Below, in pieces: positions 3,040-32,144 of a stretch of DNA of 32,144 bases. The position numbers were made by a program, and so were the translations under genes. Below the pieces are notes generated by a model, which saw only the letters and a list, made by a program, of their open reading frames with translations, was not told the DNA's origin and did not search any database. Positions within the stretch are counted from its first letter, which is position 1, and the number at the start of each line of letters is the position of its first letter. Source of the DNA: Octopus bimaculoides (lineage: Eukaryota); contig NC_069004.1 of the NCBI RefSeq assembly GCF_001194135.2, positions 15,108,808 to 15,140,951 of the forward strand, given 5' to 3'.

Positions 3040-3290
3040 ACAATTCCTAATGATATCTAATTATAAAATTATTACGGGATTTTTTTAAACATTGAATNNN
3101 NNNNNNNNNNNNNNNNNNNNNNNNNNNNNNNNNNNNNNNNNNNNNNNNNNNNNNNNNNNNNNNNNNNNNNNNNNNNNNNNNNNNNNNNNNNNNNNNNNNN
3201 NNNNNNNNNNNNNNNNNNNNNNNNNNNNNNNNNNNNNNNNNNACAAGATTCAAAGGGGTCTATAGGATAAAATGGTTGAGAACCAATACA
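3040..3290. mobile_element. hAT-like MITE remnant spanning a gap
   Basis: Shares AAAATTAT..GGGATTTTTTTAAACATTGAA and a GGTTGAGAACCA terminus with 7406-7597; the other end is not seen. Confidence 0.45.
3098..3242. other. Assembly gap (N run)
   Basis: Run of N. Confidence 0.99.
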
Positions 3291-4466
3291 GCTAATGGAA
3301 TTTTGCCTGCGTTCTGACATGTAAAATTAGAAAAGATAATTTGAGAAATTGCTTCATAATTCTTTTGAAATATGTTGGCTTGGGAATTCATTCCATCAGA
3401 TTGACACTAATAGACATGTGCCAGTCTCTGACCCCTGGTGTGCTGTCTCCTCTTTCTGTCTTACTACCATAATGGCCTCTACTCTTTGGAGGTGGATTGT
3501 TTCATACTTTTACCACTCAAGCATCCCTCAACTCACTTGTCTCTCCACCTCTTGTTGTGTTTAAATTTCTTATCTCTGCACTAATCACTATGTCCAGTCC
3601 TTTCTCCCTCGAACATTCATGTTTTGGAATTTTCTTTTCCTTTGTGTATTTCCTTTGTCCTGGGATCTTAGTATGGGAGTTCCAGGGTTTTGCAGAATGA
3701 GGAACTACCTTTTAACCACTATTGTTCCCGAGTCTACTCTGACCTGGAGTGGTAGCTATGTTTGGGTCCCAGCTATGGGTTAACTAGCATGTGTACCACC
3801 TGCTTCAAATCCAAGCTACAGATGCATCGCTAAGCAGCAGTGACTTGGTTAGTGAATCCTCTGCGATGGTCAATAATCGACAGCAAGATGAACTGCCATG
3901 ATCACGCCATCCCAAAGTGTGTATGCATGTGATCTGGGACCACACATGAACTTGTATTCCCACTGAAACTCCAAACATGAACTCTACACCTCAACAACAA
4001 ATGTGGACTACATTTATGGGGTCCACACTATTCAACATGTTTGCTCTTCCAGTGGGGCATTTGTCAAATTTGTAATCTGGATTTTGGGGCTGCAGTCAGA
4101 AGCATTACTTTGCCTACTGGAATGTGAGGCATTTGTGAGGGACATGGTGAACTTGTTGGTTGGAGTCAGCTCAACCTACCCTACGTCTTTCCTGCATGTG
4201 TTGATCTGCAGCAATTTAAGTAGAATGTTAACAGCATCAAGCTCACTGGGGGCAGAAGCAATAGCCCTTCTTCCAAACACTAAATGTAAAATCTAAATGT
4301 TGAAAGTATACATTCTAAACATGACTACCTGTAATACAGCCTACAGCTGCAGACATGTCCAGAAATAAGACTCTTGATGACAAATGGAGATTAAAATGAT
4401 TTGAGCATAATGTAAATATTAATCTTGAAAAGCATTTTTTCTTCTCCTAAAATTTCATCTCAAATT

Positions 4467-4936
4467 GTAGAGGGAACGTATGGAAGGGGTAGACCAAGGA
4501 AGACATGGGACAAAGTGGTGAGAAAGGAACTTCAAATATTGGGCCTCACAGAGGGGATAACAAGGGACTGAGATTTCTAGTGGTTTGTTGTGCTTGAGAA
4601 GACACATCAAGCTATGTAAAATTATGGTTGTCCGTTCATACAGGCATTGTCCTTTGCATCCCTCATCAGCTGAGTGGTCTTAATCTTGTGGGCTCATGGG
4701 TGCTGGTGCCACATAAAAAGCACCTGTACCAGTGTCATGTAAAAGTACCCATACCAGTGCTGCATAAAAGCACCCAGTATATTGTGTAAAGTGGTTGGCA
4801 TTAGGAAGGGCATCCAGCCATAGAAACCAAGCCAAAACAGACATGGAGCCCAGGTAGCTCTTCAGCTGGCCAGCTCCTGTCAAACTGCCTAACCCATGCC
4901 AGCATGGAAAATGGATGTGAAATGATGATGATGATG
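4467..4936 (+). mobile_element. RTE-type LINE 3' end: ORF2 C-terminus plus 3' repeat with (GAT)n tail
   Basis: EGTYGRGRPRKTWDKVVRKELQILGLTEGITRD, followed by the GTTGGCATTAGGAAGGGCATCCAGC core, AACCCATGCCAGCATGGAAA and GATGATGATG. Confidence 0.75.
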
Positions 4937-5021: not shown

Positions 5022-5117
5022 CAGGGTATTTAGATTTGAATGTTTCCATGAAGACTGTAGCATCATTTTCCTCTACATTTAATGCTTCACCCAAAGCCTT
5101 GGCGCCAATGCCATATA
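5022..5117 (-). CDS. POLQ: POLQ exon (5' part lost in gap), motif B/O-helix region YGIGAKALGEALNVEENDATVFMETFKSKYP
   Basis: PolA motif B YG; donor G|GTTAGT at 5021; phase 1 matches the 2542 exon. Confidence 0.93.
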
Positions 5118-5778
5118 NNNNNNNNNNNNNNNNNNNNNNNNNNNNNNNNNNNNNNNNNNNNNNNNNNNNNNNNNNNNNNNNNNNNNNNNNNNNNNNNNNN
5201 NNNNNNNNNNNNNNNNNNNNNNNNNNNNNNNNNNNNNNNNNNNNNNNNNNNNNNNNNNNNNNNNNNNNNNNNNNNNNNNNNNNNNNNNNNNNNNNNNNNN
5301 NNNNNNNNNNNNNNNNNNNNNNNNNNNNNNNNNNNNNNNNNNNNNNNNNNNNNNNNNNNNNNNNNNNNNNNNNNNNNNNNNNNNNNNNNNNNNNNNNNNN
5401 NNNNNNNNNNNNNNNNNNNNNNNNNNNNNNNNNNNNNNNNNNNNNNNNNNNNNNNNNNNNNNNNNNNNNNNNNNNNNNNNNNNNNNNNNNNNNNNNNNNN
5501 NNNNNNNNNNNNNNNNNNNNNNNNNNNNNNNNNNNNNNNNNNNNNNNNNNNNNNNNNNNNNNNNNNNNNNNNNNNNNNNNNNNNNNNNNNNNNNNNNNNN
5601 NNNNNNNNNNNNNNNNNNNNNNNNNNNNNNNNNNNNNNNNNNNNNNNNNNNNNNNNNNNNNNNNNNNNNNNNNNNNNNNNNNNNNNNNNNNNNNNNNNNN
5701 NNNNNNNNNNNNNNNNNNNNNNNNNNNNNNNNNNNNNNNNNNNNNNNNNNNNNNNNNNNNNNNNNNNNNNNNNNNNNN
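5118..5778. other. Assembly gap (N run)
   Basis: Run of N truncating a POLQ exon. Confidence 0.99.
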
Positions 5779-5844
5779 TACAAGGAAAATAGTCATTTTG
5801 ATATATTTCTATCACCAGAGAGATTCTTTGGGGTTTGAATAGAT

Positions 5845-6917: not shown

Positions 6918-6939
6918 TTAAATTTTGTTACAGTGTAAT

Positions 6940-7405
6940 NNNNNNNNNNNNNNNNNNNNNNNNNNNNNNNNNNNNNNNNNNNNNNNNNNNNNNNNNNNNN
7001 NNNNNNNNNNNNNNNNNNNNNNNNNNNNNNNNNNNNNNNNNNNNNNNNNNNNNNNNNNNNNNNNNNNNNNNNNNNNNNNNNNNNNNNNNNNNNNNNNNNN
7101 NNNNNNNNNNNNNNNNNNNNNNNNNNNNNNNNNNNNNNNNNNNNNNNNNNNNNNNNNNNNNNNNNNNNNNNNNNNNNNNNNNNNNNNNNNNNNNNNNNNN
7201 NNNNNNNNNNNNNNNNNNNNNNNNNNNNNNNNNNNNNNNNNNNNNNNNNNNNNNNNNNNNNNNNNNNNNNNNNNNNNNNNNNNNNNNNNNNNNNNNNNNN
7301 NNNNNNNNNNNNNNNNNNNNNNNNNNNNNNNNNNNNNNNNNNNNNNNNNNNNNNNNNNNNNNNNNNNNNNNNNNNNNNNNNNNNNNNNNNNNNNNNNNNN
7401 NNNNN
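6940..7405. other. Assembly gap (N run)
   Basis: Run of N; candidate location of the missing motif-A exon. Confidence 0.99.
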
Positions 7406-7823: not shown

Positions 7824-8024
7824 TTAAATTTTCTTTTCTTTTCTTAAATCAGTTGCAATAAGATTTCAGACAAACCTTTTCTTTATATTTGGATGCTCAT
7901 ACTGAACCATGAGAGAAATTTTTATTAAATATTAGCAGCCTTGCTCGAGTTTAATATCTAAAATAAATGTAATAAGATAAATTCCTCTACAGCAAGACAC
8001 CTGTTTCTGTCCCTCTGTTAAACT

Positions 8025-8384
8025 CTAACCTTTCATCACCTGGCACAAGGCCACCTCCTCCAATACCTCATCTCTCAAAGGATCTGTCTTGCAAGTTACT
8101 TGGTGGTGACACATAAACTGCATCCATTCCACACTGCAAAATGGTTGGCATTTGGAAGAGCATCCAGCTGTAAAAAACCACACCAAAATAGATCTCACCA
8201 GTGCTGGTGTCACGTAAAAAGTACCCAGTCCACTCTGTATGGTGGTTGGTGTTAGGAAGGGCATCCAGTTATAACAACCATGCCAAAACAGACGACTGGA
8301 GTCTTCTACCAAGCCAGCTCCTGTCAAATTATCAAACCCATGCCAACATGGAAAACAAATGTTAAATGATGACTATGATGATGA
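8025..8384 (+). mobile_element. RTE-tail repeat copy with duplicated core
   Basis: Two GTTGG..T.GGAAG.GCATCCAG cores in tandem, CCCATGCCAACATGGAAAA and a GATGA tail. Confidence 0.75.
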
Positions 8385-8513
8385 AATTCACATTTTGGAT
8401 AAATTACTTTAAAATAAGACTTTTTACATGGTACCATCACCAGTGTTTTCATGGCACCATCACCAATGCTTTTTATATGGCTCAAGCACCAGTGCTAAGT
8501 TATCTATTTAAAG

Positions 8514-8697
8514 CAATGCTCTGCAACCGGTATGCCATGGCACACTGGTGTGCCACTAGATGATGCTAGGTGTGCCACAATGTAACCTGAAGATAATTCT
8601 TTCCCATACTTTTAGCTCTATTTCTAGTTCAGGTGTGCTGCCAAATTTTGAAAAGAATATAAGAGTACCGCAAGTGAGAAAAGGTTGCCAAGAACTG
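8514..8697. mobile_element. hAT-like MITE (184 bp)
   Basis: Imperfect TIRs CAATGCTCTGCAACC / GGTTGCCAAGAACTG; 8-bp TSD ATTTAAAG / ATTTAACG. Confidence 0.75.
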
Positions 8698-8787
8698 ATT
8701 TAACGCAAAATCCAGACATTTTAATCATGCTTAAGGGCTGCAAAGGCTACAGATTATTTGTCTTTTGTCTGAAATAACATAGATTAC

Positions 8788-8922
8788 CTTCAAAAGGAAC
8801 AAAAGCATTTCTCATGCTGACAGCAAAAGACTGACCACAATTGGATTTCGTCTGTCGCTTACAATGACGATATTTTGATTTTCTTGAATCAGGAACAGGG
8901 ACAGGAGTTTCCTTTATTACAT
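8788..8922 (-). CDS. POLQ: POLQ exon, insert 2 (DVIKETPVPVPDSRKSKYRHCKRQTKSNCGQSFAVSMRNAFVPFE)
   Basis: SMRxAFVPF motif of Pol theta just before motif A; TTTTAG| and |GTAATC; 135 nt, phase 1-1. Confidence 0.93.
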
Positions 8923-9225
8923 CTAAAAATATAAATTGTTTCCAGTATTTTGGTGATAATTCTAAAACCATTAAAAACTAACAAGAAATATGGATAAAAT
9001 ACAGAAAGTAGGTAATAATTGTTGTTATTATTCAGCCCCAAGATCTAGCAGGCTTTTAATCAAAGGTGTTTCAATCATGATCATTGTTTATTATTTAATC
9101 GATGTCCAAGACACTATATTACATAATGTAGTTATCTGCTATTTCTAGCAGTTTAAGTGACCATGTAGAAGCTTCTTTGTTGACATGTTGATGATAATGA
9201 TGATGACACCAACATGATTGCTTAA

Positions 9226-9446
9226 CCCTTTAGAAATCAGATTACTATGTCAAAAGTAGTACTTTTTATATTCATATTGTTTTGAATTTATCAAATATTA
9301 TCTTGTAGCTTTAAAATTTCAATGACATGATTATTTATTTTTAGAATGACATTGTAGGGTAGGTGTGAGAGGCCTGATCTAGTCAGTTTGACCATAAAAC
9401 AGGTAGAAGATTTCAGCCTGATATGACCGCTTTGAATATAAAAGGG
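9226..9446 (+). mobile_element. piggyBac-like MITE
   Basis: TTAA|CCCTTTAG...AAAAGGG|TCAA; interior similar to the 13036 copy. Confidence 0.8.
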
Positions 9447-9539
9447 TCAAGTGCACAAGAGTGATGAATAAATAAGTGAAGTAAAGCCTTTGATCATTAG
9501 TCTGGATTAATCAAGGTTGATCTGGGCGAAGAGTAGGAA

Positions 9540-9594
9540 CAACAACAACAACAACAACGATGTCAACAACAACAACGACAACAACAACAACAAC
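9540..9594. repeat. (CAA)n microsatellite abutting a splice donor
   Basis: CAA run with CGA/TGT interruptions ending about 4 nt from the GT at 9598. Confidence 0.95.
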
Positions 9595-9598
9595 TGAC

Positions 9599-9968
9599 CT
9601 GGCAGATCAATTTGAAAATCTTTGGGAATGTTCTGAAGATTTGGGTCAAACATACTAATGCGTCCAGTTGCTGTGTGAAGCTGGCAAATACTGAATATCC
9701 GATACATGTTCATTTTGGCTAAGTGTACCTTAGCTTTTAATAGCGGAAATACAACTTTCGTGAGTGAGTTTGTAATTTGACGCCATTCTACGATCACACT
9801 TGGCAATCCATGATACACTTTGAGCTTTTCAAGGATTTGTTTGGAAGTGCTGAAATGAGATTTAAAACCTGCATGCCTTCTTTTTGGTCCCAGAGTTTTA
9901 TAAGGTACTTTTGAACCAGCAGTATTTGGGTTACCATTTACAGGTAGTTGTAGTTCAAGATACAGAAC
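9599..9968 (-). CDS. POLQ: POLQ exon, thumb/insert 1 (VLYLELQLP...FSTSKQILEKLK...EWRQITNSLTKVVFPL...TATGRISMFDPNLQNIPKDF)
   Basis: PolA STSK, TATGR and PNLQNIP motifs; TTTTAG| and |GTCAGT; 370 nt, phase 0 to 1. Confidence 0.97.
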
Positions 9969-10258
9969 CTAAAAACAAAAAATAATCATAACCAAAATCA
10001 AGATTAAAATTAAAGGTATGCAAAACGACACCCAACACTCTCTCTTACCATGATCTACCTTCAACCAATCGCTTTCTTTTTCATTCCCTCCTCCCCATCT
10101 CTCTCTCTCTCTCTCTCTCTTCCTCATTATCACAGATCACTCTCTGAAAGAACATGTTAAACTTGGTAAAACATGAGAGAAAGAAGCCTAGCTGTTTTTT
10201 TGCAATAAATACATTTAAATCAAAATTTTATCAGGGACCCCTAAAATAATGCTGTAGA

Positions 10259-10901
10259 CAGCGCTGGATTAACCATTAAGCAAAATATGCACGTGCCTAG
10301 GGCATCAAGGGAAGGGGAGGGGGCACCACAGAAAAGCTAAATAGTTTACAGCACAAAAGAAATCACTTTAAACTTGCTAAAATAATATTCAGAGTGTCTT
10401 ATCTCTTCTAAGTAGAGAAGCAGATGTGTTACGTGAGATTAATTTTTGGGAGCTGATCAAAGACTGCAATTAAAAAAAGTGAGAGAAAACTTTTCAAATA
10501 AAAGTAAAGTGGAAGTCATCATCATCATCATCATCATTTAACGTCCGCTTTCCATGCTAGCATGGGTCGGACGATTTGACTGGGGACTGACTGGTGAAGC
10601 GGATGGCTACACCAGACTCCAATCTGATCTGGCAAAGTTTCTACAGCTCGATGCCTTCCTAATGCCAACCACTCCAAGAGTGTAGTGGGTGCTTTTTACG
10701 TGCCACTGGCACGAGGACCAGTCTGGCAGTACTGGCACAAAAATAAACATTATTTTCCATCTTACTGTTAGTTTTGATTCATTTTGAAAAATAAAAATTT
10801 ATAATGTGTTTTATCATTGTTTATATTTTGAATTCCATATATATGGAGACACCAAAATCTTTTAAGTGCATAGGGCCTCTATAGGTCATAATCTGGCTCT
10901 G
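10259..10901. mobile_element. Non-autonomous hAT-like DNA transposon with a nested RTE-tail repeat
   Basis: TIRs CAGCGCTGGATTA / TAATCTGGCTCTG; perfect 8-bp TSD GCTGTAGA at 10251-10258 and 10902-10909. Confidence 0.85.
10517..10737 (-). mobile_element. RTE-tail repeat copy (nested in the hAT element)
   Basis: (CAT)n then TTTAACGTCCGCTTTCCATGCTAGCATGGG...GATGCC.TTCCTAATGCCAACCACTCC. Confidence 0.85.
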
Positions 10902-10995
10902 GCTGTAGATCCCCAATTAGCTATTTTGCTTGCTTGGACCTCTAAGGGTTGTACAGACCCCAGTTGAGAATTACTGATTTAAACAAATCACATAC

Positions 10996-11305: not shown

Positions 11306-11562
11306 ATCATCATCATCATTATCGTCGTTTAACGTCCGCTTTCTATGCTAGCATGGGTTGGACGATTTGACTGAGGACTGGCAAGCCAGAAGGCTGCACC
11401 AGGCTCCAATCTGATCTGGCAGAGTTTCTACAGCTGGATGCCCTTCCTAACGCCAACCACTCCAAGAGTGTAGTGGGTGCTTTTACGTGCCACCGGCACG
11501 TGGGCCAGTCACACAGTACTGGCAACGGCCACACTCTAAAAGGTGTTTTTTATGTGCCAGTC
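11306..11562 (-). mobile_element. RTE-tail repeat copy
   Basis: (CAT)n tail and a core nearly identical to 28107-28335 and to the reverse complement of 31880-32118. Confidence 0.85.
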
Positions 11563-11875
11563 CAGCTTATAACAGTGCGAACTCTGCTAAAGCCACCCAA
11601 GGTCCATGAGGTGGTTTTAAACTGGGAAACGAATGGGTAACGGATTAAGACTACTACCCAAGAACAGGAATGGTACCTCCAATGTGTTTTCCAAAGTTTC
11701 ATCTTCTAAAATTTCACTTACTAGGCTTTGGCTAACCTGAAGCTATAGTAGAAGATATTTTCCCAAAGGGCAACAAAGTGGAAAAGATTAGGAAAATTAA
11801 GAAAAATAAAGATAAATATTGTCTTTTAATAAATAGCTAAAGAGAATGGTGGAGAGAAAACAAACAAAAATATAC

Positions 11876-14324: not shown

Positions 14325-14737
14325 CAAGGGAGAGGGTAGGTCAATTACACCAACCCCAATGTTCAAATAGTACTTATTTTAACACTTCTGAAATGATGAA
14401 AAGCAAAATTGACCTCAGCAGAATCTGAACTCAGAATGTAAAGAGAAACAAAATGCCGCATAGCATTTTGCTCAATGTGTTAATGATTCTGCCAGTTCAC
14501 TGCCTTTATAATAATAATCCTTTCCACGAAAGGTACAATGCCTGAAATTTCAGGGGAAGGGGATAAGTTGATTACTTTGACCCCAGTCCACAACTGGTAC
14601 TTATTTTATTGACCCTGAAAGGATGGAAGGGAAAAAGTCGACCATCGCAGAATTTGAACTCAGAACATAAAGACGAACAAAATGCCACTGAGCATTTACT
14701 CAGTGAGCTAACAATTCTGTCTTCTCGTCGCCTCCTC
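14325..14737 (-). mobile_element. Two head-to-tail tRNA-like SINE copies (~14325-14497 and ~14520-14737)
   Basis: Each has GAATYTGAACTCAGAA (B-box-like GAGTTCAAATT on the minus strand) and TACTTATTT; same family as 25640-26235. Confidence 0.8.
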
Positions 14738-17778: not shown

Positions 17779-18248
17779 AGTCTCTGGTGAACAGTAACAT
17801 GAAACTATGAGTATCAGTTAGTGAAGATCATTTTTTGGCTTTAATAAAAAGCATATTACTCTATCTTTGGTATTTGAGTACTATTTTTTCCACAAGAAGA
17901 AACAATGAACAAGTCCAATAAATCTCTTAAAATTCTAGTATAAACAATTTGAATGTTAAATAGTTTACTGTCTCTGGTCGCAAGACATAGAGATTGTTTT
18001 GTGGGGAGCAAATCTAAATAGGTTATTTGTAAACAGGCACATTACAAATGTTTAATATTACAAAATCGCATTAAAGTAGCAAACTGAAATAGAATCAACA
18101 CTTTAATGGATCACAAGTTTAACATAATACTAATTAACAACCCAAGTTTCATCACTTTCTTGACATCAGTACATACTTGTTTATAACTAAGATACATTTT
18201 ATTCCACAAGTCTTCTTATATTGAAACTGCTGATCTGACGGATGTACA

Positions 18249-18830
18249 GTCGTCGTCATCGTTTAACGTCCACTTTCCATGCTAGCATGGGTTGGACGAG
18301 TTGACTGAGGACTGGTGGACCAGGAGGTGACACCAGGCTCCAATCTGATTTGGCAGAGTTTCTACAGCTGGATGCCCTTCTTAACGCCAACCACTCCGAG
18401 AGTGTAGTGGGTGCTTTTATGTGCCACCGGCATGAGGGCCAGTCAAGCAGTACTGGCGACGGCCACGCTCGAAATGGTGTATTTTACGTGTCACCTGCAC
18501 TGGCAACGATCTCGCTCGAATGTCTTTTCACGTGCCACTGGCACAAGTGCCAGGAAGGCGACATTGGTAACGATCACGCTGGTGCTATTTACGTGCCACC
18601 GGCATGGAAGCCAGACAGCTGCTCTGGCAACGATCACACTCAGACGATGCTCTTAGTGCTCCACTGGTACAGGTGCCATCACGATTTCGCTTTTGCTTGC
18701 CCCAACAGGTCTTCGCAAGCCGAGTTTAGTGTTCCTACAAATTTAGTTCGATTTCGATTTCACTTGCCTCACCATGTTTTCGCAAGCAGAGTTTAGTGTC
18801 CAATGAAGGAATGTTACGCGTATATAACAT
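18249..18830 (-). mobile_element. Long copy of the RTE-tail repeat with internal tandem subrepeats
   Basis: Standard core at 18260-18430, then repeated GGCAACGATC...TTTTACGTGCCAC units. Confidence 0.8.
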
Positions 18831-20489: not shown

Positions 20490-20787
20490 TAATTGCAGAC
20501 TGAAATGGTGGTTGTACCCAGTGCCAGTGACATGTGAACAGCACCCATGCCTGTGACACATAAAACACACCCGTGCTAGTGACATGTAAAAGGCACCCGT
20601 GTTGGTGACACATAAAAGACACCCAGTACACTCTTGGAGTGGTTGGTGTTAGGAAAAGCACCCAGCTGTAGAAACCAAACCAAACCAGACTAGACTAGAG
20701 CCTGGTACAGCTATCCGACTTATCAATACCAGTCAAAACCATTTAACCCATGCCAGCATGGAAAATAGATATTAAATGGTGATGATC
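20490..20787 (+). mobile_element. RTE-tail repeat copy with an internal ~23-bp tandem array
   Basis: About 4 units of GTG.(T/C)AGTGACA(TG/CA)TAAAA..CACCC precede the GTGGTTGGTGTTAGGAA core and AACCCATGCCAGCATGG. Confidence 0.75.
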
Positions 20788-21599: not shown

Positions 21600-21870
21600 C
21601 TAATGCCTGTTATCCATGTTGGCATAGGTTGGATAGTTTGACAGGAACTAATAAGCCAGAAGACTGCACCAGACTTCAGAATCCGTTTTGGCAGGGTTTT
21701 TATGACTGGATGCCCTTCCTAATACCAACTACCTTACAGAGTGAACTGAGTGCTTTTTACATGGCACCAGCACTGGTGAGGTCTGTTTTGACATGGCTTT
21801 TATGGCTGAATGCCCTTCCAAAGGCCAACCATTTTATGGAGGAGACTGAATACTTTTTTATATGGCAACA
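21600..21870 (-). mobile_element. Degenerate RTE-tail repeat copy
   Basis: CCATGTTGGCATAGGTTGGATAG...CTGGATGCCCTTCCTAATACCAAC. Confidence 0.65.
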
Positions 21871-24232: not shown

Positions 24233-24519
24233 CTGTAATAAAACATGCAACCTTTAGTTTGTATACAGATCACAGAACACATTAAAGTAAATTGATTTCA
24301 TAGGACAGTGAATGCAAATATATTTAATGCAGTGAACTTAACTTTAATAAACCAAGATGTGCATTTAGCAAAGAGTGGAAAAAGGGGACACTTCAAAACG
24401 AAAATAATATATTTATTTTAATAAGTTGATACCCCAACAGTCTTAATTAAAATGTTAAATAAGTAATGTGGTGATGAGTAAGACAGACTCAACTTCAGTA
24501 GAAGGGATTACATGTACCC

Positions 24520-24743
24520 ACCTGACTGGCCCTCGTGCCGGTGGCTCGTAAAAGCACCCACTACACTCTCGGAGTAGTTGGCATTAGGAAGGGTATCCAA
24601 CTGTAGAAACTCTGCCAAATCAGATTGGAGCCTGGTGTCGCCTCCTGGTCCACCAGTCCTCAGTCAAATCGTCCAACCCATGCTATAGCATGGAAAGCGG
24701 ACGTTAAACGACGACGATGATTATGATGATGATGATGATGATG
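24520..24743 (+). mobile_element. RTE-tail repeat copy with (GAT)n tail
   Basis: GCACCCACTACACTCTCGGAG...GGAAGGGTATCCAACTGTAGAAAC...GGACGTTAAACGACGACGATGA. Confidence 0.85.
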
Positions 24744-25350
24744 AGAGATGAAATAGGTAATGCTTTGAAGGGAAGGAGAGTCTAAACTTTAGTAGACAGG
24801 GTTGGCAACTCTGGACCATGTTTTGGTTTTAGTAAATCTCTTCAGTTTAGTTTGAGGAAATGTTGTGAAGTAAGGAACAAAGCAAAGTGTATAGCTTACA
24901 TAATAAGCATATGGGAATGAACTTGCAGTTCCTTACCAAAGTATGAACCAAATATACTCTCAATGAGTAATTCAGCTTTCAATTAAGATACATAACATAT
25001 GTACTTAAATTAAATAGTTTAGCTTTTAGTTAATGAGCACCAAATATGCTTTGCATATGAAACATACTTTAATCAAACCTTTTGATTTTAAATTAACAAG
25101 TACCAAATTTGTAGTAATCAAGTAATTTAACCTTCAATAAATGAGTTCCAATTAATTTTGTAAAAGTGAAGAACAGGTTTGTTGTGTCAGAACCTACACA
25201 ATATTTAGTGAACTAACACAATTCTTTCTATTTTCTACATGTTTTGATAACTTTTCAAAACTGAAGTTGATTTCTATAATAGTTTTTACAATTGGAGACT
25301 TGTACAACCTATATGTGAAACAAAGCTACGTGTTCAAATTTACAACAGGC

Positions 25351-25565
25351 TATAAATTATAAATGTCACAAACAGAAGAACATAATAAAAAATTATAAAT
25401 TATAAATGGTACAAACAGAAGAACATAACAAAAAATTATAAATTATAAATGTCACAAACAGAAGAATATGACAAAAAATTATAAATTATAAATGGTACAA
25501 ACAGAAGAATATAACAAAAAATTATAAATTATAAATGTTACAAACAGAAGAATATAACAAAAATA
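25351..25565. repeat. 43-bp minisatellite, 5 copies
   Basis: Units start at 25351, 25394, 25437, 25480 and 25523; consensus TATAAATTATAAATG(TC/GT)ACAAACAGAAGAAYATAACAAAAAAT. Confidence 0.95.
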
Positions 25566-25629: not shown

Positions 25630-26235
25630 AAATAGTCAAAAGGGAGTACTTTCTTTCTATTATTGACCCTGAAAGGATGAAAGGTAAAGTCAACCTTGGC
25701 TGAATTTGAACTCAGAAAGTGAAGACAGATGAAATGCCGCTAAGCACTTTGCCCAGTGTGCTAACAGTTCTGCCAGCTCACTGCTTTAGTATAAGAAAAT
25801 AATGGTTTCGAATTTTGGCTCAAGGCCAGCAACTTCAGGGGAGGTGTGTTAAGTCAATTATATCAACTGCAGTACTCAATTGGTATTTTTACTGACCCCA
25901 AAAAGATAAAAGGTGAAGTCAATCTCAGTGGAATTTGAACTCAGAACATGAAGACAGGTGAAATACCACTAAGCATTTTGCCTGGCATGGTAACGTTCCT
26001 TATTTCTTTATTGCCCACAAGGGGCTAAACACAGAGGGGACAAACAAGGACAGACAAATAGATTAAATCAATTATATCAACCCCAGTGCATAACTTGTAC
26101 TTATTTAATCGACCCCGAAAAGATGAAAGGCAAAGTTGACCTTGGCGGAATTTGAACTCAGAACATAACGGCAGACGAAATACTGTTAAGCATTTCGCCC
26201 GGCATGCTAACATTTCTGCCAGCTTGCTGCTTTGG
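25630..26235 (-). mobile_element. Three head-to-tail tRNA-like SINE copies (~25630-25790, ~25805-25995, ~26000-26235)
   Basis: Each has GACC..GAAA.GAT.AAAGG..AAGT..A.C...G..GAATTTGAACTCAGAA...TAAGCA.TT.GCC. Confidence 0.85.
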
Positions 26236-26521
26236 TATAAGAAAATATTGATAATAAATCATTGCATAACAAAATTAGCTTTTGATTGATCTTAAGCTGC
26301 ATTTTTTTTTCCCTTTTTTTTTTTTTTGACAAAACATGTAAAGGGGGTAAAATGCCATTTGAAAGGGAGCACTGAACTGCAAAGAGCTGAGAGACATTGC
26401 TCTATGGTAATTCTATCTAAGGTTACGTTACTCACCCAAAGTCATATTAAAATATATTTTAATGAAAAGATACTCCATGAAGTTTAATCATAAAACATCC
26501 ACAACAGTCATGCACACATCA

Positions 26522-26782
<261 letters not shown>

Positions 26783-26899
26783 TTAATGATGTCATCATAG
26801 AAAATGTATGTGGTTAATTATGCCAAAAAAATATATAAACCAAAACAAGCAAATATTCTAAAACTATACATATATATACATGCTGTAATATACAACTGC

Positions 26900-27220
26900 T
26901 TCCAAATGGGATAGGAGCAGCCTGTTTTTCCCATTCTGAGTTCAAGAGTAGATCAAGGCCATCAACATCCCCAGGGCCTCCAGTTGTTAGCTTTATGGGA
27001 TGGAATTGCATGTCATTCTCCTGTTGGTGTCAGCTATCCTGAGGGAAGCCTTGGAGGGAACCAGCTAATATTTGGCCCAATTGGTCTTTCACCCCCTATA
27101 CCTGGTTCCAATGATCAATTTGCACATCAGAAGTGCTTCAATCTTTCACCAGAGTTTCCTCTGGCTTCATCCCAACTGAGCATGGATTACCATCTTTCGG
27201 GTCCCCAGCCACATGCTACA
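26900..27220 (-). pseudogene. Decayed 28S (LSU) rRNA fragment
   Basis: Colinear conserved LSU blocks on the minus strand: GGACCCGAAAGATGGT, GAAGCCAGAGGAAACTCTGGTG, GTGCAAAT, GGTATAGGGG..GAAAGAC, TAGCTGGTTCCCTCC, TTCCCTCAGGATAGCTG, TAAAGC, AATGGG. Many CG to TG/CA changes versus the recalled eukaryotic consensus. Confidence 0.88.
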
Positions 27221-27299
27221 CCTGGATCAAAGCAGGAACATGCAGGTCTCTCAAGCAAATACAAATGCATGGACCCAACCAGGAAATGATACTTCAAAG

Positions 27300-28100
27300 C
27301 ACCATACATTGTTAGTTCTACTACATTATAGTTCAAGAAAATTGCCAGTTTCACATTAACATTATGGATGAGTGTCACATTATTTGTAAAGTAGAGGTCC
27401 AGAGCACTTTTACCTCTTGTTGGGTGGAACATTATTTACTCCATGAATAGCATATTTATAAGGTCAAGCAGAGACTCTGCTCACCTCCAGTCATGTAGTG
27501 ACATACCTGAGAGGAGGTGGCCCACAAGCCATTCAGTATTAGGGAGGTTGATGTCTCCAAGAAGAATTATGTGAAAGCTGTCGTCCTCCATATTTTTGAG
27601 GCTCTCTTCAAATGAGTCCCCAGAACTGGGACCATCCAGTGGATGATATGTAGTACATATTATCATTTTGATTTTTTTCAATATGTACTATTAGTGTGTC
27701 CACAAACTGAGTTTGAGTCTGATTTAGGCCTACAGGGGTGACAACTACACAGATTTTTTTTCTCCTGTCTGTTTGAAATACAAGATGCTTTGTGTATCTC
27801 AGCATCTGCCAGGTCAGCAGTCAGATGTGTTTCTGCTAGTGTCATGCATACTACTTGATTGCATGTAACTAAGTCTATCAGATATGGGGTTTTGCTCCAG
27901 TGGATTGTAACAAGGCCCCTGACATTCAGCAGGAACATTGGTGTAACATATGGGGTGTCAGTAGCGGCCACTGGTTTAACATTTGTGGAGATGTCAGAGG
28001 TGACCATCCTGGATCTTTTGTTGTTTGCGGCGGTCTTGAACGCTGGTATGTGTTTCTCTGACTCAATGTCTGATGAAGCCAAGTCAGCTGCCTTTCAATG
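27300..28100 (-). mobile_element. Frameshifted APE-endonuclease region of a CR1/L2-group LINE
   Basis: Across three frames: FLLNVRGL, MTLAETHL, ICTTYHP, IILLGDINLPNTEW, PTRGKSALDLYFTN, in the expected APE motif order. Confidence 0.75.
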
Positions 28101-28106
28101 ATCTGT

Positions 28107-28335
28107 GTCATCATCATCATCGTTTAACGTCTGCTTTCCATGCTAGCATGGGTTGGACGATTTGACTGAGGACCGGTGAAACCGGATGGCAACACCAGCC
28201 TCCAATCTGATTTGGCAGAGTTTCTACAGCTGGATGCCCTTCCTAACGCCAACCACTCAGAGAGTGTAGTGGATGCTTTTACGTGTCACCCGCACAAAGG
28301 CCAGTCAGGCGATACTGGCAACGGCCACGCTCATA
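28107..28335 (-). mobile_element. RTE-tail repeat copy
   Basis: (CAT)n plus GTTTAACGTCTGCTTTCCATGCTAGCATGGGTTGGACGATTTGACTGAGG and the core. Confidence 0.85.
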
Positions 28336-28507
28336 TCCAAAAAAGATCACCCTTCAGCTGCTGCTGTCCACACTACATCTACATATGACTTCTTCTTAGG
28401 AACACTACATATAATATCCACATATTTCCAGAGTGAAGGCATTGGTTTACAGAGCCTTTGTTTTTGCAAGTTCTACATTTCTTATGTTTTTGTGCTCAAC
28501 TAACGCA

Positions 28508-28570
28508 GGACCAAGATGGATGGCACGTGCAGGTTAAAAATGTCCCAGCAAGCTCGACCAGGTGATGATA
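28508..28570 (+). mobile_element. Very short 3' stub of the RTE-type LINE seen at 745-1115
   Basis: AGGACCAAGATGGATGGCACGTGC resembles AGGACCATGATGGATGGCATGCTC near 1050; ends GATGATAATGA. Confidence 0.45.
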
Positions 28571-28964
28571 ATGAATTAAGCAGGTGCTCAGAGTGACCTA
28601 TATCAAAGCTCTGAAGGTAGATCATAGCCAAGATTAAGGGATTCCTTTGAAGAAAGAACCGTAACACTAAGCTCAAAGAATCCCTGGAAATATGATAGAA
28701 TGTTAGACACCACAGATAAATTCATATGATGGAGACACACAAGGATGTCATTTTACCAAACTGACAAATCTATTATAAAATGTTGATTATCAAAACCAAC
28801 TGAGGATTTCTCTAAAGTAAGTTTTCAACTTAAAAAGCAAAGAATTGTTCCAAAGTTTTCTTTGATATAAGTTTCCAACCACAAATGGAAGCAAAAAAAA
28901 AAATAATAATAATAATTTTAATTTCATTTCAACAAAAATAAACTAAAACCAATTTAGAACTAAC

Positions 28965-30304: not shown

Positions 30305-30542
30305 ATTGTGATACCTAACATGAAAGCAAGGAAGTTGTCGGCCATTGCATGGAAGCCAAGGGCACGAGCCCGGGTGAAGCCAACCGCGGGTGCAGATCTT
30401 GGTGGTAGTAGCAAATATTCTAGCTAGAATATTTGCTACTACCACCGAGATCTGCACCCGCGATCGGCTTCACCTGGGCTTGCGCCCTCGGCTTCCATGC
30501 AATGGCCGACAACTTCCTTGCTTTCATGCTAGGTATCACAAT
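30305..30542. repeat. Spacerless 238-bp palindrome built from a 28S rRNA fragment
   Basis: Arms 30305-30423 and 30424-30542, 111/119 paired, centre TAG|CTA. Each arm carries GAAGCC..GGGC...AGCCC.GGTGAAGCC...CGCGGGTGCAGATCT.GGTGGTAGTAGCAAATATTC, matching conserved eukaryotic 28S rRNA. Confidence 0.93.
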
Positions 30543-31794: not shown

Positions 31795-32118
31795 CTTATG
31801 CCCGTGACATGTGTAAAGACATTCGAGCGAGATCGTTGCCAGTGCCGCTGGACTGGCTCCCGTGCAGGTGGCATGTAAAATACACCATTTTGAGTGTGGC
31901 CGTTGCCAGTACCGCCTGACTGGCCTTCGTGCCGGTGGCACGTAAAAGCACCCACTACACTCTCGGAGTGGTTGGCGTTAGGAAGGGCATCCAGCTGTAG
32001 AAACTCTGCCAAATCAGATTGGAGCCTGATGCAGCCTTCTGGCTTGCCAGCCCTCAGTCAAATCGTCCAACCCATGCTAGCATGGAAAGCAGACATTAAA
32101 CGATGATGATGATGATGA
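31795..32118 (+). mobile_element. RTE-tail repeat copy with (GAT)n tail
   Basis: GTGGCACGTAAAAGCACCCACTACACTCTCGGAGTGGTTGGCGTTAGGAAGGGCATCCAGCTG...CGATGATGATGATG. Confidence 0.88.
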
Positions 32119-32144
32119 TTGTTTGATCTTGATCAAGTAGACTT

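Follow-up and report, generated by a model that had tools for sequence, protein, structure and literature searches.

The stretch of Octopus bimaculoides DNA analysed here (32,144 nucleotides, in the following the window) carries on its minus strand a gene with helicase exons at high coordinates, a central exon of 807 aa and polymerase exons at low coordinates. The concatenated helicase exons have been matched to DNA polymerase theta (POLQ) with a best E of 1e-77 and 55-64% identity, a search in which no close POLQ orthologue has turned up. One intron of this gene, 2.2 kb long (26767-28962, minus strand, with a GT donor and an AG acceptor at 26768-26767), is flanked by an exon ending in '...GVAFHHAG' (28963) and an exon starting at 26766, and holds the stump of a LINE, a fragment of large-subunit (28S) rRNA sequence (LSU) and a SINE. 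Several runs of N, which represent assembly gaps, have been found in the window (~1250-1850, 3150-3300, 5100-5780, 6930-7400 and ~29500), and as some of them are located in or near the exons of the POLQ polymerase domain, a gene model derived from this scaffold would be incomplete. Elsewhere, a zero-spacer palindrome at 30305-30542, with two arms of 119 nt that are 93% complementary, is possibly an element able to form a hairpin, or else an artefact of assembly. Tandem repeats occur at 25299-25563 and 25655-26250, where ~5-6 units of a 43-nt repeat lie beside three tandem units, each of ~220 nt, of another repeat, and the ~220-nt repeat recurs at 14374-14697.

In a cmscan run over the whole window at Rfam gathering thresholds, the sole match has been the eukaryotic model LSU_rRNA_eukarya (RF02543), which aligns with its positions 813-954 to 27061-27203 of the minus strand at 95.5 bits (cut-off 50 bits) and an E of 1.2e-21. 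When the adjoining stretch from 27060 to ~26930 was scanned separately, a second, independent and colinear LSU match has been obtained (23.1 bits, E 9e-4, model 955 to ~1085), and the two matches together delimit the decayed core of the fragment at 26930-27203 of the minus strand, corresponding to model positions 813 to ~1085 in domain II downstream of D3. Under a permissive cmscan run the 5' edge moves to 27239, and the stretch 27204-27239 (model ~673-683/804-812) is a probable, weakly assigned 5' continuation that would include the end of D3 and its closing helix. In this extent (~27239-26930, ~300 nt) the fragment represents the part that follows immediately on the 3' side of the D3 expansion segment, in the 5' third of the 28S, and covers ~270 of the 3401 positions of the model. 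A preliminary description of this DNA, made from the letters alone, had placed a 28S fragment with colinear LSU core blocks at 26900-27220 of the minus strand and had proposed an Infernal comparison with RF02543; that comparison has returned a significant match, the colinear blocks are real and the proposed interval is close to the one obtained by cmscan. With a score above the gathering threshold and colinear blocks of both sequence and structure the fragment belongs to RF02543, and a functional rRNA gene it is not, being partial, broken in its helices and situated in a POLQ intron instead of rDNA. Further extensions have been rejected: the permissive alignment that runs on to 26561 is spurious as it traverses a POLQ coding exon, an extension to ~26880 by an apparent match of ccatttggaagcag to CCACUUUUGGUAAGCAG has been made by eye and lacks cmscan support, and LSU signal has been absent from 26840-26931 scanned alone. 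On the 5' side, a scan of 27204-27420 alone has likewise been without LSU signal, so that the fragment has not been extended into the spacer there.

Measured at the 160 most conserved columns, identity of the fragment to the consensus is 78.8%; 28 transitions and 6 transversions separate the two, and the K2P distance amounts to 0.265. This identity of 79% is similar to that of the older SINE copies of the window, which share 74-78% with their own consensus. Of the 15 CpGs in the LSU consensus a single one has been retained, and in the cmscan alignment ~8 base pairs of its helices are disrupted, which indicates that the RNA structure of the fragment is not under constraint. The decayed 28S copy in the POLQ intron is a pseudogene-like relic, a possibility that had been raised beforehand. 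The pervasive CpG-type decay ascribed to it in the preliminary description agrees with the disappearance of 14 CpGs out of 15, but no more than 6 of the 34 changes are CpG-type in the strict sense, and the rest are mostly non-CpG transitions. Indeed, the four types of transition (A>G 9/53, G>A 8/45, C>U 6/33, U>C 5/29) are even, each at ~17-18% per site, and the SINE copies that have decayed in place within the same window show a ts:tv of 2.9, from which the fragment does not differ significantly (Fisher p 0.4). Judged by the substitutions, the spectrum appears compatible with a long neutral decay in place in this genome. Because the transitions are even and the ts:tv resembles that of SINEs decayed in place, no divergent or foreign donor is needed, and the divergent donor rRNA that had been postulated is unnecessary. 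The same evenness of all four transition types has led to the rejection of A-to-I editing as an explanation for the A>G changes, and a bacterial donor is excluded since the eukaryotic LSU model wins the Rfam clan competition. The antisense strand of the fragment (26984-27289, plus strand) is free of stops over ~124 codons and contains an ORF of 101 aa from a TTG start, for which a word-indexed protein search has found no homologue; it echoes the spurious antisense ORFs often annotated on genuine 28S genes and is not evidence of coding.

The second old piece, at 27297-28108 of the minus strand, is the stump of an APE-type LINE, consisting of the ORF start and the endonuclease (EN) domain, as delimited by Pfam, by relatives found with HMMER, by tblastn and by a DNA breakpoint. 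A stitched three-frame translation of 28082-27300 matches Pfam PF14529 ('Endonuclease-reverse transcriptase') with 29.1 bits, just above the cut-off of 27.4 bits, and an exhaustive HMMER search of 1.84 billion representatives has yielded 338 relatives with a best E of 2e-47, the closest of which are 46-54% identical to the stump. A LINE endonuclease remnant on the strand of the 28S fragment, as it had been described before, has thereby been borne out, and the PDB sequence search as well as the word-indexed protein search have been without match for it. The best relative (P0121, 984 aa, E 2e-47, 50% identity) is an intact ORF with EN and RVT_1, and the second best (P0122, XP_036369725.1, E 2e-43) is a protein of 430 aa from Octopus sinensis. 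The reading frame of the stump is interrupted by two stops and shifted at least twice, and ~10-15 codons are missing from its interior. P0122, P0138 and P0128 align to it from the extreme N-terminus of the ORF, and the 66 extra upstream residues of P0123 are missing from the window, which shows the LINE copy to be 5'-truncated at ~28108.

The other end of the stump is equally well defined. In tblastn searches with 150 relatives, LINE homology has been confined to 28114-27274 (with extents from 28114/28064 to 27292/27274), and nothing past residue ~250 of P0121 has been matched anywhere in the 32 kb. The EN of the relatives ends in '...SDH..ELTMYGP' and is followed by '...NLNFHKADW', which leads into a linker and the reverse transcriptase (RT); the window follows the relatives up to 'ELTMYG' and diverges afterwards. 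A DNA alignment to the copy of this LINE family in the Octopus sinensis genome (L012) sets the breakpoint at ~27297, beyond which identity is at background, and the DNA of the stump is ~68% identical to L012 and to a further copy with an intact ORF in an ENA contig (L013). Of the parts that make up a complete APE-type LINE, the APE endonuclease is present, and neither an RT domain, linker or C-terminal region nor a LINE 3' UTR or tail has been detected in the 32-kb window. The stump thus resembles the octopod APE-type family with EN and RT (P0121, P0122) in that it aligns from the N-terminus through the whole EN at 46-50% protein identity, but differs from it by its stops, frameshifts and deletion and by the missing linker, RT, C-terminus, 3' UTR and terminal (AAATT)n.

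Three copies of this LINE family have been sampled, i.e., L012, L013 and a copy in a Logan contig (L014), and in all of them EN passes through the linker directly into RT without any LSU sequence. The junction of EN and 28S, for which recurrence had been suggested as a check, is accordingly absent from 3 of 3 sampled family copies, and on this sample it is specific to this locus and not part of the design of the family. The 3' end of the family, as seen in L013, consists of a short GC-rich UTR followed by (AAATT)n. An LSU-derived continuation or tail has been found in 0 of 150 protein relatives of the stump, no other LSU copy is contained in the 24 kb of sampled LINE-family loci, and no second copy of any part of 26900-28100 exists within the window. 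A metagenome scan for relatives of the LINE has returned distant elements only (22-33% identity), all without LSU, and the ORFs of the window, including those across the LINE-LSU junction, are absent from the protein collection searched.

The stump and the 28S fragment both lie on the minus strand and are joined in the same orientation, as would be expected of a chimera. The gap from the LINE breakpoint to the LSU sequence measures 57 nt if the latter is taken to begin at 27239 and 93 nt if the strong core is taken, and a degenerate form of the SDH motif ('LNY', 27336-27328) precedes the extended LSU start by ~90 nt, which fits the earlier statement that the LSU sequence starts about 85 bp past the last APE motif. 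The spacer between the two pieces (27240-27296, minus strand) matches neither LSU nor the LINE copies L012-L014; it may represent D3 sequence peculiar to the lineage, filler DNA or what decay has left of the LINE linker. On the far side, the remainder of the intron from the LSU fragment to the splice acceptor (26767-26929, minus strand) is AT-rich and shows no LSU signal, LINE 3' UTR or tail, or poly(A). It has been considered as a LINE 3' UTR or tail and rejected, as 26929-26767 does not match the 3' end of the family as found in L013 and the candidate ATTAAATTATAAATT before the acceptor is too short and AT-rich. A candidate TSD, ATGATGACACAGATCATTGAAA (28112-28090) against ATGATGACATCATTAAA (26799-26783), has also been discarded because its 5' copy is internal to the LINE (P0128 aligns to 28114-28022); its score was reached by 65 of 2000 shuffles and by 6 of 70 control segments. 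A TSD flanking the whole composite has not been found, although a short one may have become unrecognisable through decay at K~0.26. CpG o/e values of 0.15 for the LINE stump and 0.06 for the LSU fragment have been determined, and both pieces are old. The 30 kb contain one LSU fragment and one fragment of this LINE group, which lie ~57-95 nt apart on the same strand, and the chance of such proximity if the positions were independent is ~0.3%, a rough and post hoc estimate.

A SINE abuts the 5' edge of the stump (28108-28345, minus strand) and is of interest here as context only. It is 5'-truncated, carries a (GAT)n tail, differs by 7.1% from a local consensus and has kept 10 of 10 consensus CpGs. 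This low divergence, the intact CpGs and a CpG o/e of 0.72, as against 0.15 and 0.06 in the stump and the LSU fragment, mark it as a much later and separate insertion, and a chimera of three parts made of SINE, LINE and LSU has been rejected on the grounds that the SINE is far younger.

Two facts call for an explanation: the LINE has left the 5' end of its ORF without the parts that 5'-truncating TPRT keeps, and 28S sequence starts ~60-95 nt further on. We favour, with about even confidence, a dead one-off composite relic that arose by sequential events at one site and has no present function. An APE-type LINE copy from the family with EN and RT and an ORF of ~984 aa would first have inserted into the POLQ intron, and a piece of ~300 nt of host 28S would then have entered, by insertion or capture, where the LINE was broken shortly after its EN-coding region. 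This piece may have come from cDNA made in trans by a LINE reverse transcriptase, or from rDNA or cDNA used as filler during break repair. The linker, RT, 3' UTR and tail of the LINE may have disappeared in the same event, if the insertion deleted part of its target site, or in a separate deletion afterwards. Both pieces would then have decayed neutrally over a long period to about 0.26 substitutions per site, and much later the SINE would have inserted next to the 5' edge of the stump. We infer this order of events as well as the mechanism of insertion or capture; what the pieces are, how far they extend, their strand, breakpoints and relative ages have been shown, as has the normal absence of LSU sequence from the LINE family. 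As tail, LINE 3' UTR and TSD are all missing, an insertion with deletion or a capture fits better than clean TPRT, and since nothing of the LINE can be detected on the 3' side of the LSU fragment, an insertion into the LINE presupposes such a deletion. The sequential history needs no unusual enzymology. Against it stand the two or three events that it needs, where a chimera needs one, and the tight proximity of the two pieces on the same strand, which independent positions would produce with the low probability estimated above.

With this history the locus behaves like a dispersed rRNA pseudogene that adjoins a LINE, and it is an ordinary composite relic in a cephalopod. Dispersed rRNA pseudogenes, or rDNA-like junk, form a known class (Robicheau et al. 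2017; PMC10946416). As in those that appear as LSU-rRNA hits of RepeatMasker, an isolated, decayed and partial 28S outside the rDNA array lies unconstrained beside a LINE; nothing essential differs, and only the taxon (octopod) and the precise junction set the locus apart. In human, too, the first 28S pseudogene was found beside a LINE-1. At present the locus matters little, as the class has been documented in mammals and fungi and the octopus example is decayed and functionless within an intron, although it illustrates that an LSU-like hit in a cephalopod assembly may stem from an ancient nuclear relic and is not necessarily rDNA or contamination.

The closest competitor is a one-step chimera of LINE and rRNA, as had been proposed in the preliminary description, in which reverse transcription would have started on a 28S fragment, switched to a LINE mRNA broken after EN and stopped ~0.8 kb on. 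We regard this as possible, if on the unlikely side. It would account for the close abutment of stump and LSU sequence on the same strand and for their similarly extreme CpG depletion, and also for a stump without everything 3' of EN, which an ordinary 5'-truncated LINE insertion cannot yield. It would moreover have precedents in primates, where 18 chimeras of 28S and LINE-1 have been described with 28S pieces of 50-482 nt (median 269) from along the whole 28S, 83% of them in the orientation of the LINE; the octopus fragment of ~300 nt, fused in the same orientation, is comparable. In the primate elements, however, the RNA segment lies 5' of a LINE part that retains its 3' end and tail, TSDs are present and simultaneous insertion has been demonstrated by multi-species alignment. 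Here the 28S lies 3' of an ORF and EN stump that has neither tail nor TSD (the sole candidate being LINE-internal sequence), the LINE clade and the host phylum are different, and simultaneity is a candidate interpretation. A second precedent comes from the MINE-type elements of Magnaporthe, described as bipartite or tripartite chimeric retrogenes made by multi-part template jumps of a LINE (PMC2104539). These are likewise direct fusions of unrelated transcripts that include LINE sequence, but they end in the 3' part of the LINE, where reverse transcription starts, and exactly this part is missing from the octopus locus. The polarity is thus opposite to that of all described chimeras, with their cellular RNA 5' of the LINE 3' end, and what the earlier proposal retains is a 28S that abuts LINE EN on the same strand, while the order is reversed and LINE 3' UTR or end, tail, poly(A) and TSD are all missing. 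A single step would in addition demand priming at an internal 28S site together with an acceptor LINE RNA broken after EN, and it leaves 57-95 nt at the junction that match neither parent. If the stump and the 28S did arrive together, the recombination of LINE and rRNA would be extended to a non-L1 LINE in a mollusc, with an unusual polarity, which would be of modest importance.

The most far-reaching reading would take the block as one representative of a retroposon family not yet described from octopods or, more modestly, as the first LINE-28S chimera from an invertebrate, with an inverted polarity produced by rRNA-primed reverse transcription that passes to LINE mRNA; we judge it improbable. 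If the inverted polarity were true, the RT of this LINE could initiate on rRNA.

An amplified family with copies elsewhere, either as a non-autonomous retroposon made of a LINE 5' part and 28S or as an rRNA-derived, SINE-like family, is improbable. rRNA-derived SINEs do exist, as exemplified by SINE28 (Longo et al. 2015, PMC4994717), a multi-copy element transcribed by Pol III that originates from the 28S 3' end and has 27 loci in human, and LINE-derived bodies have been described in SINEs (PMC5786205). The octopus sequence shares with SINE28, which has been dispersed by retrotransposition, its derivation from 28S, but it stems from positions 813 to ~1085 of the 3401 in the model, and neither further copies nor a promoter or tail are in evidence. 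The rRNA-derived retroposon envisaged previously would therefore not be of the SINE28 kind, since the octopus fragment originates in the 5' third of 28S and not in the 3' end by which SINE28 is defined. As a family it is unsupported as well, there being no second copy in the window and no LSU sequence in the three sampled LINE copies or the 150 proteins. Even the closest EN relatives found among the 1.84 billion representatives share just 46-54% identity with the stump and lack an LSU continuation, the ORFs that span the junction are absent from the protein collection, and a TSD has not been found. If the block were to prove multi-copy, it would be of modest interest.

That the junction was born in an rDNA array, by a LINE that inserted into or recombined with a 28S gene, and that a copy of it later reached the POLQ intron at the DNA level, as an rDNA 'orphon', is very improbable. 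Known rDNA-specific LINEs target other 28S sites, which counts against such an origin. Whereas LINEs of the R1/R2 type would meet the rDNA with their terminus at a fixed target, the junction here lies inside the LINE ORF just after EN; the LINE family occurs in non-rDNA contexts, as L012 sits in non-rDNA sequence without LSU nearby, and merely ~300 nt of 28S are present. In its favour, rDNA arrays do gather LINE insertions and truncated units (reviewed in PMC10946416). A foreign eukaryote as the donor of the 28S, e.g., a parasite or symbiont, is extremely improbable: it would explain the non-CpG differences and could be read from an 11-nt insertion in a variable loop of the permissive cmscan alignment, but the differences are even transitions with a ts:tv statistically like that of SINEs decayed in place, the near-complete loss of CpGs is the expectation for a long residence in the host genome, and the bacterial variant fails in the clan competition.

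Some observations concern other database entries and the repeats of the window. In the Octopus sinensis locus L012 (CM016884.1:13564613-13582122), the gene LOC118768055 ('uncharacterized protein', 430 aa) at 8001-10922 corresponds to EN and linker of the LINE copy, and as the RT follows downstream of it, interrupted by a SINE, the gene model is a transposon fragment. A relative of the stump deposited as WP_347046886.1 (P0156, 'hypothetical protein, partial [Escherichia coli]') comes from a contig of 257 nt and is an octopod-type LINE EN fragment 54% identical to the stump; it is probably cephalopod DNA that contaminates an E. coli assembly. The SINE family of the window is abundant and is characterised by a (GAT)n/(ATG)n tail and a conserved 3' block '...CCCATGCTAGCATGGAAAGCGGACGTTAAAC'. 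Besides the copy at 28108-28345, it is represented on the minus strand at 10516-10800, 11307-11600 and 18241-18540 and on the plus strand at 24450-24727 and 31800-32119, and older copies lie near 4765-4922, 8105-8366, 20592-20764 and 21613-21831, so that at least two age classes, with 93-96% and 74-78% identity to the consensus, can be distinguished. The family is also found in Octopus sinensis, where a copy at 10109-10277 of L012 has 82% identity. As it ends in (GAT)n/(ATG)n and the LINE family to which the stump belongs in (AAATT)n, the partner LINE of this SINE is probably a different one.
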